A DNA stretch of 63,784 bases, the filler included, from Platydemus manokwari (lineage: Eukaryota), in assembly GCA_037951405.1 (NCBI GenBank). It is 5 parts of 5 records of this genome, joined end to end, with 100 filler letters (N's around TTAATTAATTAA, not from the genome) between each part and the next. Parts side by side here need not be neighbours in the genome. Positions count along the whole stretch, not along the records: positions 1 to 9,375 come from JBBMOY011257652.1; 4 more parts are not named here. One strand, 5' to 3'. The number at the start of each line of letters is the position of its first letter. Within the stretch, counting starts at the first letter, position 1. Below the pieces are notes generated by a model. The model made no database searches. It had not been told where the DNA came from and was given only the letters and a program-made list of their open reading frames with translations. This document shows positions 1 through 9,375 of this stretch, one piece after another. Made by a program: the position numbers and the translations under genes.

Positions 1-254
1 TTGATGTATTGGCGAATAGATTTTTTGTTCTGTTGTAAACATGGCTTTTGATTTGAATATTAAAAATGAAGAAATTTCGGAAACTAACAATCGTAATTAA
101 TAATAAAAAATCAATAAAATATTTTCATTAATAATTTTATAATCAATATCAATCAATCGATATCTATATCATTGATATATTTAATTATTATCATTATTCG
201 AAATCATTATTAAATCATTGATAAATATCAAATCATTATTATTGATAAAATTAC

Positions 255-3200
255 TTTTTCGATTGAAGAATTTTCTTCTCAAAATTATATATTTTCTCTT
301 CATTATCATTATTATTATTATCATTAATACATTTACATTTTATTATACATTTATCTTCTGATGATAATTTGTCAAATGTTTTCATGAATAATCCAACGAT
401 TTCTTCATCAGCTTTAACATAAAGAAATAATAAATCAGTTTTTATATCGATTATCTCATTATTAAATGGTTTCCAATTCATTTCCGATTTTAATCTGGAA
501 AATTCATCAATAGCTTCATGATCATATTTGCCAATAGGACTTGAATTATTGGCTCTATAAATGACAATCTTCATACATTCCATTGGCATTCCAGCAATTA
601 TCCATGATGCACAAGCTTTGACCATAGCTCTCATCATCAATCGTTTACCGAATCCCTAAATATGCAGAAATAATCCATATAATAGGCTATTTTGATTTGT
701 TTAAATATATCGATCTATTATTTTCAACATGTTTAATAAAATAAAAACACACATCTCATAACTTGTAGACTATTTTCAAATTTGCTAAGCAATATAATTA
801 GTTTTTAATGGAATCTGTGAAATCAATATTTAATAAAACACAATAAATTGCCACAACTGGAAAATTCTGTAATCAATTTCTAGTTGTCAAAAAGCGATAA
901 TCAAGCAGATCAAATATTTATCAGATGAAATTAATTAAATATATTTTTAATCTATCACCCAGAAATTATAGACACACACATACACTCATGTATATACATG
1001 AAAAATTAAAATCAAAATTTTTCATAAGCTATATAAAGGGTACAAAAAACATTTGACGTTTATTAAAATAAATATTAAAATTAAAAGTAATTAATGCTTT
1101 ATTTGTCAATAGGATTTGCTAATAAGACATTGAAAACGCAAACTAATACTGAAAGATCATCCATTGTCATGTTTAGTATTTAAAAGAGCATTTCATGTAA
1201 TAGATAACATGTAAGATGTAGAATAAGTATGATGATAAGTAAAGTATAAGCAATAACCATTTAAATAACCTAGCGAACTCATATAGATCTCACAAGTACA
1301 TGTAGACACATGTTCGATTGAATCAAAAGAAAACAAATATTTATCAAATTAATCAGGAATTTCAAATCAGATGGATTAGAAATGCAAACAAATGAATTCT
1401 GGAATAATGAACGCTATATAAATCAGTACATTCGCAAAATGAGAGATTATGATACGATAATTGTTATTGCTTTTGGTGAAAAGGTTTATTTATAACAAAT
1501 CAGTGCAAGCTCATAAACAATTGATTAATTTGTGAACACAAGAATCATGATTTCAGATGAAGATGTCTTTCAGTTTGAAAATTCCTTTGCATTTACGATG
1601 AAAGTCAGCTTCGCAAATGATGAAGACATAACTCATAAAGAAAATATAAAAATCAAAATGAATAATTTGCTTAAATTTCACCAATGATTCTGAATCAATA
1701 TGAAAGAAAAATAATCGAAAACCAGCTAGATGTATCAAACGAGAGATAATGATAATCAATAATGTGGAAATGGAAATGCTGGAATATCCAACAATGAGAT
1801 TACAATAATGAAGAATACAAATGTAACATAGGTAATCATCATAGGTAATCGTCAAGTAATGAATGTTCTATCACACTAACCGAAGTTTGTTTCATAAACC
1901 AGCGCAAAAAGAATACACAATTATTTCATAGGTGAATTTGTTATGATAAAATCATTCGGAAATTATAACATCTGACTAATAGATGTCCCAATTAGTTATG
2001 ATAATTAAGAGCAGGGGTCTCCAAAGTACGGCCCGCCAAGCTTACTATGAAACACACGAACATTATGACAAAAATCTTGCTACAGGTCATGGTTGTCTGA
2101 TGAACATTTAAATGACTTATTAATGACTCATTTTGAACCCCAATTTTTGTAAACCTAGCATAGTTTTGGCCCTCCAAATTTTAAAAAATCAGCAATGTGG
2201 CCCTTTACTGAAAAAAGTTTGGAGACCCCTGATTAAGAGAATTAAATCAATCAGTGTGTGTGCCATTTATCGTAGAGTTAATTCAATAATTAAGAAGTAA
2301 TGGTTTTCCTTTTCTGAGCATTAATGCAAAAAAGTCAATAGATCTCGGATAAGCGAGTTAATCGGTTGAAGTTATGCAAAATGTATTACAGTATTAATAT
2401 AAAAATTGATTAGTTTGTTTTAACAAACTTCTCATTGCATTAGGTAAGGCCCCAATAACTAATCGAAGCTTGATGGACAAGTTATTGGCAAGCTTGATTT
2501 TTTAAGATTCTGTAGTCTACTCGGAGACACAGACAAGTCATAGCGAATTATTATAGAAGATATATTATTGTATTCATGTATATGATCTGAAGATAAATTC
2601 TGATAAATCCACTTCCTTTAGAAATAAGATCATGGAGTATGCGAGAATTAGATCAGAAATTTGGACAAAATTACACAAAACATGAATACTGAGAGCAAAA
2701 ATGCGTCACGGAATTAAAATGAACTATTTTTTGAACTATCAAATTCCTATAACAGGTTTATTAAAGATTGTGCGCATCTTTATACATCGAGATGTATTGA
2801 GATGACAAACCCATACAATCGACTATGTTATGTAATAAGAGGTTTAATAAAGGAATTAAGGCTACCAGAATTAATGGGAAACTAGAATATTTGCCATTGA
2901 TTATGGTGCTAGTTTTATAGGCTTACTTTTTAAAGTAATGAAAAATGGTAATAAAGTCAAATGGTCGTAAAATCTGTCAATTAACAACAAGGAACCACTT
3001 GCTCTATCCAAGTTTGTTGTTCATATCTTAGCTTTACGAAAAGATATTCATCAATTGAATCAGATAACAAGATATTGGTTTTCTTGAATACATATAACAG
3101 GCCCATCAACACTCTGTTCTGGTTGACTGGATGGCCAGAAGGATTCCATAAAGCAATATAAAAGCAAGAGTACCAAAACAGCATAGATTATTTATAAAGT

Positions 3201-4178
3201 ACTGGTAAAACACCGTGTGTATTGCTCCAAGCGAATCACAGAGAATACAAAATTGGAAAACCAAATCCATGGCAACAGATTCAAAAGAATTCAGTGCTTG
3301 TATAAAGGATTATAGAAGAACAGCAACCTAATATTCTGAGTTTGAATGCAATGTTTTTTCCCAATTTTTATGATTTATAAATGATTATTGAATCAAAAGC
3401 CAAACCTCATAAAATGGGACAAGTTTTAAATTAATGATATTATTTGATTTTTTTGAACTTAAATAATAATTAATTAATGATATGATTCATCCGATTTATT
3501 TTTATCGCAATTAAATTACTAATTTAACAAAATAAATCCAATCGTTCTTATACTAGCCTATATAAGAAATATAATGAATGAAACCTGATTGCCAGTTGCA
3601 AGTATTGGTGTTATCATTGACCATTCTTTTTTACGGAATGTTGTAAACAATGCTCGAAAAACTGCACCCACTAATGCAGCTGGATTCTCTAAAATAGTTT
3701 CAGTTGACTGATTGTTTATCCCTTGTTCAAAACAAAGAATTCGTCTGATAGACATTATAACAATATCAATTGGTATAGGAAATTTAAATACCTATAGGGT
3801 AAATCAACTGGAAGAGCCTTCGAAATCCAGCAATGAAAATTATTTCGTAAATCTTCGGCTTTCTCCAGTGATAGCGATTCGATTGATAATTTCAAATCAT
3901 TGTATAATGCACCAATCAAAGTATCTTCTATGGGTTCGTAATCACCTAAATTCATCATTAATACTAAGTATATTTAGACATTTGTTATAAGAATTTTTAA
4001 TTCCGAAAATATTAACGATGTAAAACCATTAAAAACCATTAAACACACTTGGAAAAGCTGAAACCAACAAAAGATCAACTTCAGAGTGTTTCGATAATTT
4101 TGTAATATCACCCAAATAAAGTTCAATTTTTCTTAATTTACTATTAATCTGAAAATTTATAGATTCACATAACTCCAT
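255..4178 (-). CDS. Macro-domain + TIR-like protein, 5' four exons; gene continues beyond the left edge of the window
   Basis: Exons 4178-4049, 3945-3792, 3744-3585 and 655-255 have GT-AG boundaries with consistent phases (1, 2, 0; a phase-2 GTAATT donor at 254). Spliced protein: MELCESINFQINSKLRKIELYLGDITKLSKHSEVDLLLVSAFPSDYEPIEDTLIGALYNDLKLSIESLSLEKAEDLRNNFHCWISKALPVDLPYRRILCFEQG...SMITPILATGNQGFGKRLMMRAMVKACASWIIAGMPMECMKIVIY...TDLLFLYVKADEEIV...ILQSK. Macro motifs: GDIT, VDLLLVSA, LIGAL, PILATGNQG. The distal segment resembles TIR betaA-alphaA. Confidence 0.8.
2012..2231. mobile_element. hAT (Charlie/Buster-type) non-autonomous element / MITE, 220 bp, inside intron 3 of the Macro-TIR gene
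   Basis: Perfect 14-bp terminal inverted repeats CAGGGGTCTCCAAA...TTTGGAGACCCCTG. Perfect 8-bp TSD ATTAAGAG at 2004-2011 and 2232-2239. Confidence 0.92.
2400..3330 (+). mobile_element. Possible highly decayed LTR-retrotransposon pol remnant
   Basis: Purine-rich, coding-like but broken sequence with fragments such as GWPE and NPWQQI, reminiscent of the Gypsy pre-integrase/integrase region. No intact ORF. Confidence 0.3.
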
Positions 4179-7100
4179 GGTTCAATACTTAATAATTACA
4201 TTCAATTCAAACATCAAAATTTAATTAAATATAATTTACTCGATTTTAACAAACGCTTATTTGAAGAAATTAAGTTAGAAAATTTAAAATTATTAAGCTA
4301 ATAAAAAAAATATTAAATGTTTCTTATTTATAAAAAATTATCTTGATGTGAGGAAATAAAGTTCATTAAAATACTAAGAAATTATTTACAGAGATTATTT
4401 GTGCGTGATGATAAAATAAATAAAATGCCAACTGATCCTAGGAAATTTAAAAAAATACTTATACGACTGAAAGTCAATGATTTCCTTAAAACAAATAGTC
4501 AGTTCAGACAACATTGTAATAATAAAATACATTCAAATAATTTATAGAACATTTCTTTACAATGCTGACACGATAAAATTCACGCGTGTATCACAAAAGA
4601 GCTCGGTAAAAAACCAAAAGGAACATGTTGTAATTTTTTAATTGGTTAAATGATCTCACTAGTATGTGAGAGCTTATTTTTCTTAAGCTTACAATTACTT
4701 ATATATAAAATTTGGTATATGAATTCCAAAGATGCGATCTTTTAGAACCTTTAATTAGGTGTGGATTAAGTTTTGTTGTTACTTATTCTTATTAAATATT
4801 GCTTATAATTATCAGAGCTTAAATTCTAGCGATCGTTTCTAAATTTATCCAAGTTTATCTTTTTCTATACCAAAGCTTTAAAAGTCAATATCCTCGAAAA
4901 TAAGTTTTTCGTTAGCGAATTTTATCAGGTAAATTTTTAAGATTGAATTATGATAGAAATCCATCAGCTTATATAGATGCTGAGATGCTTAAATAGATAG
5001 GATTTTCTGTTACTCTTGTAAATTTTAATTTTTTTAATACTTTGTCCCTTAATTATTTATTATTTTATTAATTTGGTTGGAATTATAAATTTTACTATAT
5101 TATATGTCAACCTTTAAAATTTATAATTAAAACTCTTTTTTATTCCTTCCTTATTTATAATTATAATTATTGGATTTATAAATTATATATACATATATTA
5201 TTGACATATTTTATTTACAAATTTAAATTCAAACTTTTTGCAAATAAAAAACACAAAATTTGTCACAATAAAACGGAATCATAAAAACTCAATCGAATAA
5301 AAAATTGTGATTAGTTGTCACGTAAATTCAAAGATCGAATCGAATAAATGAATGAATTGGGAGAAATACCTGTGGAATTCTTGCAAACTATTACATGTCC
5401 AAATCCACGCTACAATTTCTCATACCGCAAGTCTCCCATTTTGGATTAGGTTTAATTGGGTCTTGTTTCAATTCTCTTTTTAAATTCATCTTATTGGGAT
5501 GGTGTTGCTTGGTGCTGTTTATGTTTTTCCCTGGCTATTTTGCTCTTCCATTCACCATATGAACTGATGGTAACAAGAGCTTTTTCTTCCCTTTCTCCTC
5601 GCTATCTGAGTACAGCATCAGTCGATCAATGCTTTCCCAACATCACCAAATGTTACTATATTTTTTACGTTATAATTTTAGGGCGAACTTTACGAATATG
5701 TTGCCGCTAATATATTAGTTATATGTGATTTTTATTATTCTGGGGATTTTTTAGGAATTTTATAGTTGAAATTTTTGTCCTCTTTATTGTTTAATAGATA
5801 TTTTCGGTATTTTATTGATTTGTTTAATTCTATTTCTGATTATTATTCGATTTTTAGTCATTTTACCATTTATGGATTTATAATTAGTCATTTTTGTGAA
5901 AAAATCTAGCTATTAATTAAAATTTTATTTATTAATTATAATTATCTGTTTATTAGTAATAACCATTCTTCATTGTAAAGGGTATACCCAACATGTATAT
6001 AAAGTGGAATATTCAATAATAATGATGTATTTTGGGGTTGCACTTAATTCATTTGAATTATCAGTCTTTATATTGAATTCTACTGTGGATCAATGCCGAC
6101 TTGATCAGTCTCTGTGAGCTCTGACCAACCCCTTAAGGTACACAATTTAAACCTTAACTTATTGTTTTTATTTTTCACCTCACTATCAATACTATATGAA
6201 GATAGTATGATAGGCAGCAATGATCCAATTAATAAATTTATCAGTCTCAAAATGTATTTTATCTTCAATCAGTCTCAAATTTCAATATCCTTATCCTATA
6301 GCCTACGTAACAACTTATGTCTACAATATGTTTATTAGCGATACAAAATTATACAATTATACAATTATAAAAATGTTTTGTTTTACAACTATTAATATAC
6401 ACCGAAATTAAATAACCTAGACGATGACGCTTACAATTCTGGAAAAGATTACGGTTGCAAACTTCAACTCTAGAAGCCGAACCTTAACCTGCAAGATATT
6501 TGAGACAAAGCTCTATAATAAGTTGATAGCGCGATATTCTATATATAGTATTGATTATGATTTTACACAAAAATCTAACTCACTAAGCTTGATGGCAAAG
6601 AAACGAATTCGAAGGGCATAAACTTGAACAAATCTACTTTGTGGCAAACGTATTCTCAAAATCAATGTTTTCTTTTTTCGTAAATCTTCTTACACAACCT
6701 AGTGGTTTCTTAGAATGGGCGAGCTGTAATGATTAAAACTCCTATTTATATGGTTTGAATGTCGGCGCTTTTATTCCTCCAAAATAAAATATTTTGTTAC
6801 ATTTTCCGAAAAAATTCCCTCATATTTAATTTATAAATTTCCTTTTAGTTTTCCCGCTATTATGTTTCTTGCCATAAAATTAACCATATATTCAAATTAT
6901 ATTCCATTTTAAATATATATCAGAATAAATTGTTACATAAAATAATATATATTTTTTCTTTCAGAACTGCGAACATTTAAAATCATCGTCGCGTAAAAAT
7001 ATATCGCTACAATGCGATTAAAATAAAATTTACAATATCGCTACAGTGCGAATAAAATAGAATAAAATAAAATAGTTGCTTCATGCAATAGCAACTATGT

Positions 7101-7269
7101 TTCGATTTTCAACAATATCATAAAAAATTTATCAACATCAGGCGTCGATGTTGAAAATGGTTGAAAATCGTTACAATATTTATTACAACTAATTATAAAA
7201 ATTATATACCATATATATCGATATTATACTTTATACATTCAATACCACATTGTCATTGTTAATATTGTC

Positions 7270-8560
7270 AATTTTGTTGGAACCCCAACATAAAGAAAAG
7301 TCTAATGTATTTAGAGTTCATATGGAAGCAGAAAAGAATATATTGAGAAAGACGAATTATTAGCATAAGAAAATAGAAAATATCAAAAATAATAATAAGA
7401 AAAAGTGCAGGAGAAATGACAGGAAGACATGACAAATAACAGATCCATAAAGGAAGGAAAGCCAAGAAATATATAATGACCACGAAGAACTTTATGAATA
7501 TTACCCTTAAGAATTAATGAAGAATCCAATCGAAAGTCAGAAAACATGTGTATCGCCACAAACGAATCTTGAAATAACGGATTAAATATATCAAAAATTC
7601 TAAAGGCAAACCGTTAAATTGTAAAAATATGGTAAAAAATATCCTAGTGTGAATTAATAGTCTAATGAGCATGCAACAGGTCCCAAAAAAGGTCATACCA
7701 ATAATCAATAATATAACCAAATCACTAGATGTTATAATCAGCAACATGATCAGCACCAATAATATCAATACAAAAAATATGTCTGAATCTATAACAAATC
7801 TCTAAATGGGAAAAGACATAAAATAACATGAACAATAATCCGTCAATTATTGCGAATCATAAATTAATCTCGCACCTTTAAATCTAATGAAAGAGAAGAC
7901 ACGCATAGACTATGCGATCTTACAAATTTAATTAATAATTTAATTATAGAAATGCCACATTCTAATAATAAATTAGAGTTTACAGAAAGGATGCAAGAAG
8001 TAAGTGAGGGAGATAAAACAGCATGATGAATACCAATAACGCTTAAAACATTAACCAATGAAGTTGACAAAGGAATATAGATATAGAATTGAAAGAAAAA
8101 ATTAATAAATGATGATTTTTAACAAGGTTGGACATCAATAACTAGCACCTAATCAAGAGATGTATGGAAACTAGTATGAGCACAACAGATACATAATAAC
8201 TATAATAATGGAAGCAATATTTGCAACGCATGTGATAAACGCTGTAAGAAGAGTAAACGCAAAATAAGTGAATACAACAGAAATGGAGGAATATTCATCA
8301 TTAAATATAGATCAGTGCTCATAAGCATGCACAGTAAATATAGCACAACTAAGACGGAAAGAAAAATGAGCTTATCAAAAGATAGAGTTTCTTTTTTGAC
8401 AAGCGAAAGTGTACAATTTTGTGTATCATGAAACCCTTTTCAATGCTCATATAAGAGAGTGGGTTATGTACTAGTGGGTTCCATAATATTGATTTATATA
8501 AGGAATTTAAAGAAGCTCAAAAATTAAGTAGAAAATAATGCAGTATTCCTATTTAAATTC
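7270..8560 (+). mobile_element. Possible highly decayed LTR-retrotransposon internal region
   Basis: Strong A-rich strand bias and broken coding-like segments (e.g. IVNY...INLAPL, similar to the RT thumb region). Many stops. Confidence 0.25.
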
Positions 8561-9070
8561 GTTAGTGATCATTGTTATTATGACTCCAGTAGGTGTAGGT
8601 CTTTAATAGAAATATAACATTATTATATTTTTATAAATGAATAAAGTGAAGGCCAATATTTCACTAAAATGAAATGTTTGACATATGACATAATGATAAA
8701 ACAGCTAATAGAATAAATAATCAGGTTTAAATTAAAATTTATTAAATTGATTAGTTATTGATTCTATTATTGTTTGAATTTCAAATTAAAGATGTTGGAT
8801 CCCCATAATACCCATTTAGTTTGAATAAAAGTCCAAAAAATAAAACAAAAAACAGAAATCCAAAAAAAGCCCAAATCTATATAAATATAAATCGTATAAA
8901 GTTATATTGTAACCCAGTTAGGATTCCCGTATGTGTAAAATATTGTAACCCAGTTAATCTTTGAGTATGGATTGGTAATAGCTCGAATATGAGAAGCTAG
9001 AATGAGAAAATGATGTCAACAGTTCGCCTCAGAACACAATCCCAAAACAATGCAACAATCCAAAAAGAAA

Positions 9071-9248
9071 CAATTCACTTTGTGTTATAACAATATTGAT
9101 ATTATGTGTTTGACATTAACATTTACATGAAATATTATGTGTCTTAATATTTTTATTCTCAATTCACTTTATGTTATAACAATATTGATATTATGTGCTT
9201 GACATTAACATTTACATGAAATATTATGTGTCTTAATATTTTTATTCT
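9071..9248. repeat. Direct tandem duplication, two copies of an 89-bp unit
   Basis: CAATTCACTTT(G/A)TGTTATAACAATATTGATATTATGTG...TTTTATTCT occurs at 9071-9159 and 9160-9248 with few mismatches. Confidence 0.9.
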
Positions 9249-9375
9249 TTGTTTTTTAATTTTTATTTTTTGTTGTGAAAATCCGGTGGAGGATTAAGAG
9301 AGAGAAAAACGCGGAAAGTTTAAAATAAATAAATAATTAATATAATAAAGATAATTAATATAATAAAGATAATTA

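Follow-up and report, generated by a model that had tools for sequence, protein, structure and literature searches.

A spliced Macro-TIR gene of Platydemus manokwari belongs to an uncharacterised family with animal and bacterial forms

The window analysed here is a stretch of 63,784 nucleotides joined from five records of the Platydemus manokwari genome (GCA_037951405.1), and its positions 1-9375 are the whole of contig C1257652 (JBBMOY011257652.1), one of the 1.99 million contigs of a 911-Mb assembly. Four exons on the minus strand of this AT-rich contig (~27% G+C), between positions 4178 and 255, belong to an uncharacterised Macro-TIR family with animal and bacterial forms. They are part of an old, vertically inherited and constrained animal gene. 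Judged from a structural model of a homologue, the N-terminal ~190 residues of its product are by fold a divergent macrodomain. Sequence comparisons make it probable that the gene continues on a second contig (C901977), with the rest of a first TIR domain (TIR1) and a complete second one (TIR2).

The four exons correspond to four open reading frame (ORF) fragments, all on the minus strand, which are united in frame by GT-AG introns of 103, 47 and 2929 nt. Exon 1 (4049-4178) starts with an ATG at 4178-4176, in the context ACCATGG and with an in-frame TGA two codons upstream, and encodes residues 1-43 and the first base of codon 44, including the GDIT and VDLLLVSAF motifs. Intron 1 (3946-4048, phase 1) separates it from exon 2 (3792-3945; residues 44-95, both end codons being partial), which carries the DY, LIGAL, DLR and CWIS motifs. 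Beyond intron 2 (3745-3791, phase 2), exon 3 (3585-3744) provides residues 95-148 with RILCFE, VFRAL and PILATGNQ. Intron 3 (656-3584, phase 0), within which the homologue alignment revealed no missing exon, leads to exon 4 (255-655). The latter comprises the last part of the macro domain (residues 149-~185, positions 655-~545), a linker helix and the first ~55 residues of TIR1, which run from DLLFLY (436-419) to the exon end. If read to the TAA at 253-251, the joined frame counts 282 codons. Its motifs follow each other as GDIT (residues 23-26), VDLLLVSAF (34-42), LIGAL (53-57) and PILATGNQG (141-149), the last one being created by the exon 3/4 junction. The Macro motifs quoted in an earlier note on this DNA are thus all present in the order given there. 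That note had also taken the four exons as one protein; the in-frame joins and the colinear homologue alignment agree with this, except that the gene is most probably not limited to these four exons.

Support for the splicing is comparative, being drawn from sequence alignments, yet strong; searches for sequencing runs returned one DNA run and no RNA run. With exon 4 alone, a HMMER scan of 1.84 billion representatives returned 12 weak matches (best E 4e-5) in animal proteins from Candidula, Pomacea, Batillaria and Ptychodera. In the longer of these, one to three Pfam TIR_2 domains come after an unannotated N-terminal stretch of ~200 residues, and a search seeded with one such homologue added further gastropods, bivalves and sea urchins. 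The 282-aa product is colinear across all three junctions with more than 20 animal proteins (E ~1e-53 to 1e-35, 34-40% identity), the best match being Ptychodera (E 8e-53, 40% identity over residues 6-250). In a comparison of 46 members from animals and bacteria, 43 positions show at least 80% conservation; the spliced protein retains 38 of them, including all invariant family positions (D35, S40, A41, Y46, L68, W83, E101 and G146).

Gene structures pointed in the same direction. The introns of four homologues (Porites, Ptychodera, Lottia and Candidula) were mapped on their genomic loci and placed on one alignment, where introns 1 and 3 occupied the identical column, with identical phase, in all four genes. 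Intron 2 had the same phase as in the mollusc and hemichordate genes but stood 7-9 residues upstream of theirs, and it was absent in the coral. When contig C901977 is included, five out of six introns agree in position and phase with those of the Porites, Ptychodera, Lottia or Candidula genes.

Exons 1-3 occur a second time in the assembly, on the minus strand of contig C1475629 (1380-2082), with the same splice sites, 80% protein identity and 72% DNA identity. The two copies differ by 0.127 nonsynonymous (dN) and 1.28 synonymous (dS) substitutions per site; dN/dS is 0.10, and both copies of exons 1-3 have therefore evolved under purifying selection. The second copy could be a paralogue, or the orthologue of a second related species in a mixed sample; the assembly yielded no duplicate of exons 4-7. 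Beside it, on the opposite (plus) strand of the same contig, lies an 85-aa ORF (381-638) that had no Pfam match.

Exon 4 most probably ends at position 255 (AA|GTAATT, phase 2) and not at the TAA at 253-251, which lies inside the putative intron 4 donor GTAATT (249-254). The alignment of its tail with TIR1 of the homologues extends as far as the residues preceding strand C, and Lottia and Candidula both have a phase-2 intron in exactly the column of this donor. Contig C901977 was found by searching the assembly with the TIR1 of a homologue. On its minus strand, the acceptor ttccag|A, at position 3440, opens an exon in a phase matching the exon 4 donor. This exon 5 encodes the remainder of TIR1, and two more exons provide the linker and TIR2; the two introns between them share column and phase with those of Ptychodera, Lottia and Candidula. 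The hypothetical join counts 586 residues and aligned to the Ptychodera long form (P0018), residues 15-477, with an E value of 9e-92. Contig C901977 may instead belong to the second copy on C1475629, but exons 4, 5 and 7 occur only once each in the assembly, which speaks against this.

An interspersed repeat at positions 1-107, at the very end of contig C1257652, has 40 scored copies, of 81-97% identity, among 940 candidates in the assembly. It probably lies inside intron 4, and it probably explains the assembly break at this contig end. Another copy stands upstream of exon 5 on C901977 (3918-4007) and is 81% identical to it. Since the two end repeats are only that similar, the contigs are considered not to overlap.

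The macro domain was invisible to family models. No match to Pfam Macro (PF01661) was found at E<=10 in the exons, the animal homologues or the bacterial homologues, and NCBIfam had no match to the N-terminal domain. Among single exons, the Pfam scan gave only DUF7886 at E 0.09, which was taken as chance. Likewise, an ESM Atlas feature search with exon 4 returned only weak, unrelated hydrolase clusters. The three-layer alpha/beta/alpha macro fold, on the other hand, was recognised in an AlphaFold2 model of the Ptychodera homologue (P0018:10-217), whose predicted local distance difference test score was 92.7: Foldseek gave 226 matches at E<=1e-3, and the 50 matches listed were all macrodomains. 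A profile built from 20 homologues and the exons matched only macrodomains among PDB sequences (PARP14, alphavirus nsP3 and YmdB), with weak E values of 0.05-1. In the profile alignment, GDIT, with its adenine-contacting Asp, and the diphosphate loop 2 (P..TG..G) stand opposite GDITK and PAIGTGNAKQ of PARP14 macro 3, VSAF is opposite its VNST, and (T)LIGAL occupies the loop-1 position. At these last two sites, MacroD-type hydrolases carry the catalytic Asn (NAAN) and a GGGV loop 1. Since VSAF and (T)LIGAL replace them, the MacroD-type motifs were judged absent. Sequence identity to any solved macrodomain was 9-18%. The Macro fold proposed in the earlier note is thus supported by both searches, and its view that the signature is unlike PARP9/14/15, MacroD and macroH2A holds at the sequence level.

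Homologues display one to three Pfam TIR_2 domains. Neither TIR nor Macro was called by Pfam on any exon of C1257652 alone, including the 60-residue fragment at its TIR end, which nonetheless aligned with the opening ~50 residues of TIR1 from homologues that are Pfam TIR-positive. Exon 7 of C901977, taken here as linked to exon 4, scored 37 bits with Pfam TIR_2 (cut-off 28 bits). The two TIR domains differ in their catalytic position. In TIR1, as read on C901977, the catalytic Glu is replaced by Thr (AIETY), and by Gln in the other animals inspected, so that TIR1 is probably inactive. If C901977 is joined to exons 1-4, TIR2 keeps the Glu (CSEEF), as do the TIR2 domains of the animal homologues inspected (P0002, P0009 and P0010) and the TIR of four aligned bacterial relatives. 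In the family at large, the TIR2 motif (CQEEY, of the pattern C-x-E-E-[YF]) aligned to the catalytic WCL(D/E)EL of plant TIR NAD+ hydrolases (NADases).

The animal form, which occurs in cnidarians, echinoderms, a hemichordate and molluscs, is organised as Macro-TIR1-TIR2(-TIR3). In an unrooted maximum-likelihood tree of 47 macro domains, all animals and the spliced protein formed one clade (support 100/100). Within it, the coral came first, followed by the echinoderms with the hemichordate and by a protostome group (98/95), an order that resembles the species tree. The spliced protein was the long-branched sister of all molluscs in this last group. Taken with the shared introns, the tree indicates vertical descent from before the cnidarian-bilaterian split; the conservation of introns between coral and bilaterians itself places the gene in animals before that date. 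Recent transfer and contamination are therefore excluded as origin of the gene in exons 1-4. The tree being unrooted, any ancient transfer between bacteria and animals may have run either way.

Profile searches also retrieved metagenomic proteins of ~345 residues, encoded by a single ORF, in which Macro again precedes TIR. Bacterial and animal members share 40-47% identity, and these metagenomic proteins are 42-47% identical to the hemichordate macro domain. When one genome was scanned for each GTDB species, 23 bacterial loci were confirmed. They come from about ten phyla and were found in Actinomycetota, Cyanobacteriota, Alpha-, Beta- and Gammaproteobacteria, Gemmatimonadota, Myxococcota, Planctomycetota, Bacteroidota and Bacillota. 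Three of the 23 came from cultured isolates, namely Nitrosomonas sp. Nm34, Primorskyibacter sedentarius and Hominibacterium faecale, the tblastn match of the latter covering the macro half only. PADLOC and NCBIfam models matched only the TIR half of these proteins (ThsB-like, SAVED-TIR and PDC-S66 models), and all scores were below threshold. These results bear on three earlier proposals. The signature had been described as typical of bacterial proteins with a C-terminal TIR and of some invertebrate homologues, which the bacterial single-ORF Macro-TIR proteins confirm. An intron-bearing animal member of a bacterial-type clade had been proposed, and the tree and the shared introns bear this out. 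As to the C-terminal TIR, it is indeed carried by the family, whereas C1257652 itself holds only ~55 residues of TIR1, the rest probably standing on C901977.

An all-against-all comparison of flanking genes at 24 bacterial loci gave no conserved partner gene beyond close relatives. The 53 nearest flanking genes were mostly housekeeping, and at most a handful matched PADLOC models (phospholipase effector, BrxH/Mko-type helicase and PDC-S37 models, one member each). One ADP-ribosylglycohydrolase and one patatin-like phospholipase were recorded among the neighbours. No clear defence-island setting, of the kind that the earlier note had proposed to look for, emerged from these loci. The scatter of the family over bacteria would fit a mobile defence system made of a single gene, but the genomic context does not demonstrate one. 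One metagenomic Macro-TIR copy adjoins a BrxE gene, and another contig (L012) is gene-dense, carries mostly unannotated ORFs and could be viral. In the ESM Atlas, the family's own mollusc cluster was recovered with a template-modelling (TM) score of 0.91. A related macro fold joined to DUF4145 also occurred there in Bacteroidota (~349 aa, TM 0.80); the sensor-like macro domain may occur together with effector-type domains other than TIR.

Some further features of the contig and of the assembly were recorded. Intron 3 contains, at about 2008-2244, an interspersed element of ~230 nt, of which over 1200 candidate copies (~90% identical) were found; it resembles a short interspersed element (SINE) or a miniature inverted-repeat transposable element (MITE), and it matched neither tRNA nor Rfam models. 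Near the opposite contig end, an 89-nt unit is duplicated in tandem at 9071-9248 (copies 97% identical), and an AT-rich microsatellite of 9/18 nt occupies 9320-9375. Most sampled contigs of the assembly measured 230-650 b, and the sampled long ones were AT-rich like C1257652. At least four different, apparently intact mitochondrial COX1 genes (contigs C1514745, C1389203, C1344449 and C1440324; 64-87% protein identity) occur in it, reflecting either a mixture of several animals or unusual mitotypes. Two of them look gastropod-like, but the spliced protein stands outside the molluscs in the macro domain tree; a protein search with a COX1 fragment matched only metagenomic entries.

As to mechanism, we favour, with a probability of roughly 55% and by analogy with known fusions, a sensor and effector combined in one chain, in which a sensing macro domain gates the self-association of the TIR domains. 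The macro domain would sense ADP-ribose (ADPR) or another NAD-derived ligand and, once bound, would let the TIRs associate. The degenerate TIR1 would be the built-in partner of the active TIR2, which would cleave NAD+ as a NADase or cyclase, leading either to depletion or to products of the ADPR or cyclic ADPR (cADPR) type. The whole may play a role in stress or infection responses. The active site of a TIR enzyme is built from two TIR domains. STING-TIR and SAVED-TIR proteins are switched by ligand-triggered oligomerisation, and SARM1 is controlled by autoinhibition (PMC11204291). This reading was preferred because sensor-TIR fusions switch by ligand-controlled self-association and because the Glu is kept in TIR2. 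A further-reaching version seems rather doubtful to us. It would make the family a bacterial-type immune module in one chain, kept in animals from corals to molluscs since before the cnidarian-bilaterian split; its macro domain, which Pfam does not see, would sense a second messenger derived from ADPR and activate a tandem-TIR NADase.

Several points weigh against the sensor-effector reading. The fold model was built on a homologue of 40% identity and not on the spliced protein itself. The splicing, above all the link between exons 4 and 5 over two contigs, was inferred from comparisons, and the ligand, its binding and the enzyme activity of family members are putative. The invariant D35, Y46 and E101 may be compatible with a catalytic role of the macro domain, despite the missing MacroD-type Asn and GGG loop. 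With few defence genes among the neighbours and no conserved one, genomic context gives an immune role no support. Finally, an annotated short isoform exists in Ptychodera flava (X3, 294 aa). It has 287 residues in common with the long form, ends after seven more, and diverges exactly at an intron that stands four alignment columns (about four residues) from intron 4. An isoform with Macro and half of a TIR may be produced recurrently, and a Macro-only product may be real.

The best-surviving alternative, though an unlikely one, is that the TIRs are non-enzymatic scaffolds like those of MyD88 and TIRAP, and that the macro domain recognises ADP-ribosylated proteins and brings the chain into a signalling complex. 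The family TIR2 did match the TIRs of MyD88, TIRAP and TLR2 in PDB, and TIR1 is devoid of the catalytic Glu. Structurally, the macro domain came closest to PARP9 macro 2 and macroH2A1.1, which are binding rather than catalytic macrodomains. Such an adaptor is, however, difficult to reconcile with the retention of the Glu in TIR2, on C901977 as well as in the inspected animal homologues and the four bacterial relatives, and with bacterial one-gene relatives that are without TLR-like partners.

Less probable still is a macro domain acting as hydrolase, either processing or removing the ADPR-type product of the TIR or reversing protein ADP-ribosylation, instead of as sensor. Residues D35, D45, Y46 and E101 are invariant in animals and bacteria alike. 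YmdB and an Oceanobacillus enzyme, both catalytic macrodomains, lie within 1.5-3 Z units of the top structural matches, and the ADP-ribosylglycohydrolase mentioned above adjoins one bacterial locus. Against this, the MacroD-type motifs are replaced by VSAF and (T)LIGAL.

A short product, namely a 282-aa Macro with a truncated TIR arising from retention of intron 4, or a truncated duplicate locus, appears the least probable: the ORF does end at the TAA, isoform X3 departs from the long form at a neighbouring intron, Acanthaster and Batillaria entries are similarly short and the link to C901977 is indirect, but this TAA falls within a good donor that coincides, in position and phase, with an intron of Lottia and Candidula, exon 5 is present once and in the matching phase, and the dN/dS of 0.10 speaks against decay of exons 1-3.

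No description of this Macro-TIR family was found in the searchable literature, and two preprints of 2026 that survey the TIR domains of eukaryotes or animals mention no macro partner. Database labels of the family proteins read 'uncharacterized' or 'TIR domain-containing'; the macro domain is omitted from them because Pfam and NCBIfam miss it. Bacterial defence modules have been reused in animal immunity (TIR, STING and cGAS-like proteins among others), a field of active research to which the family would add another case. If the immune reading is true, small-molecule signalling of the Thoeris kind would take place in animal innate immunity alongside cGAS-STING. The family also offers a tractable test of the control of animal TIR enzymes by ADPR-type ligands. 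Taken alone, the gene in exons 1-4 is a modest result. It is one more, rather divergent, protostome member from a fragmented and mixed assembly.

Among known systems, type II Thoeris (the ThsB TIR enzyme with the ThsA Macro-transmembrane effector) likewise pairs a TIR with a macrodomain in NAD+/ADPR chemistry. Yet it is a two-gene operon with a membrane effector, whereas both domains stand here in one soluble chain. The PADLOC ThsA model gave no match, and the ThsA macro structure (8r66), although among the fold matches, ranked 49th (TM 0.49), far behind PARP9 and macroH2A. Identity with type II Thoeris was therefore rejected, given the single chain, the lack of a membrane effector and of an operon partner, and the absence of any special likeness to ThsA. 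PARP9 macro 2, PARP14 macro 2/3 and macroH2A1.1 share 10-16% identity with the macro domain, and no PARP or histone part occurs here. A Macro/ThsB-like cluster of 64 members in the ESM Atlas comes closer in architecture, since its bacterial proteins of ~360 aa also have Macro followed by TIR_2. Its macro domain is nevertheless recognised by Pfam (TM 0.73), and the clade of the exon 1-4 gene is a separate macro lineage. TIR-STING (bacteria and oyster), SAVED-TIR and SARM1 (ARM-SAM-TIR) likewise combine a ligand-binding domain with a TIR NADase bearing the catalytic Glu, and TIR-STING resembles the Macro-TIR family further in that its architecture occurs in both bacteria and invertebrates. The family would differ from all three by its macrodomain as putative sensor and, in animals, by the tandem of a degenerate TIR1 and an active-looking TIR2. 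By analogy, its working would be nearest to that of TIR-STING or SAVED-TIR, with the macro domain taking the place of STING or SAVED.

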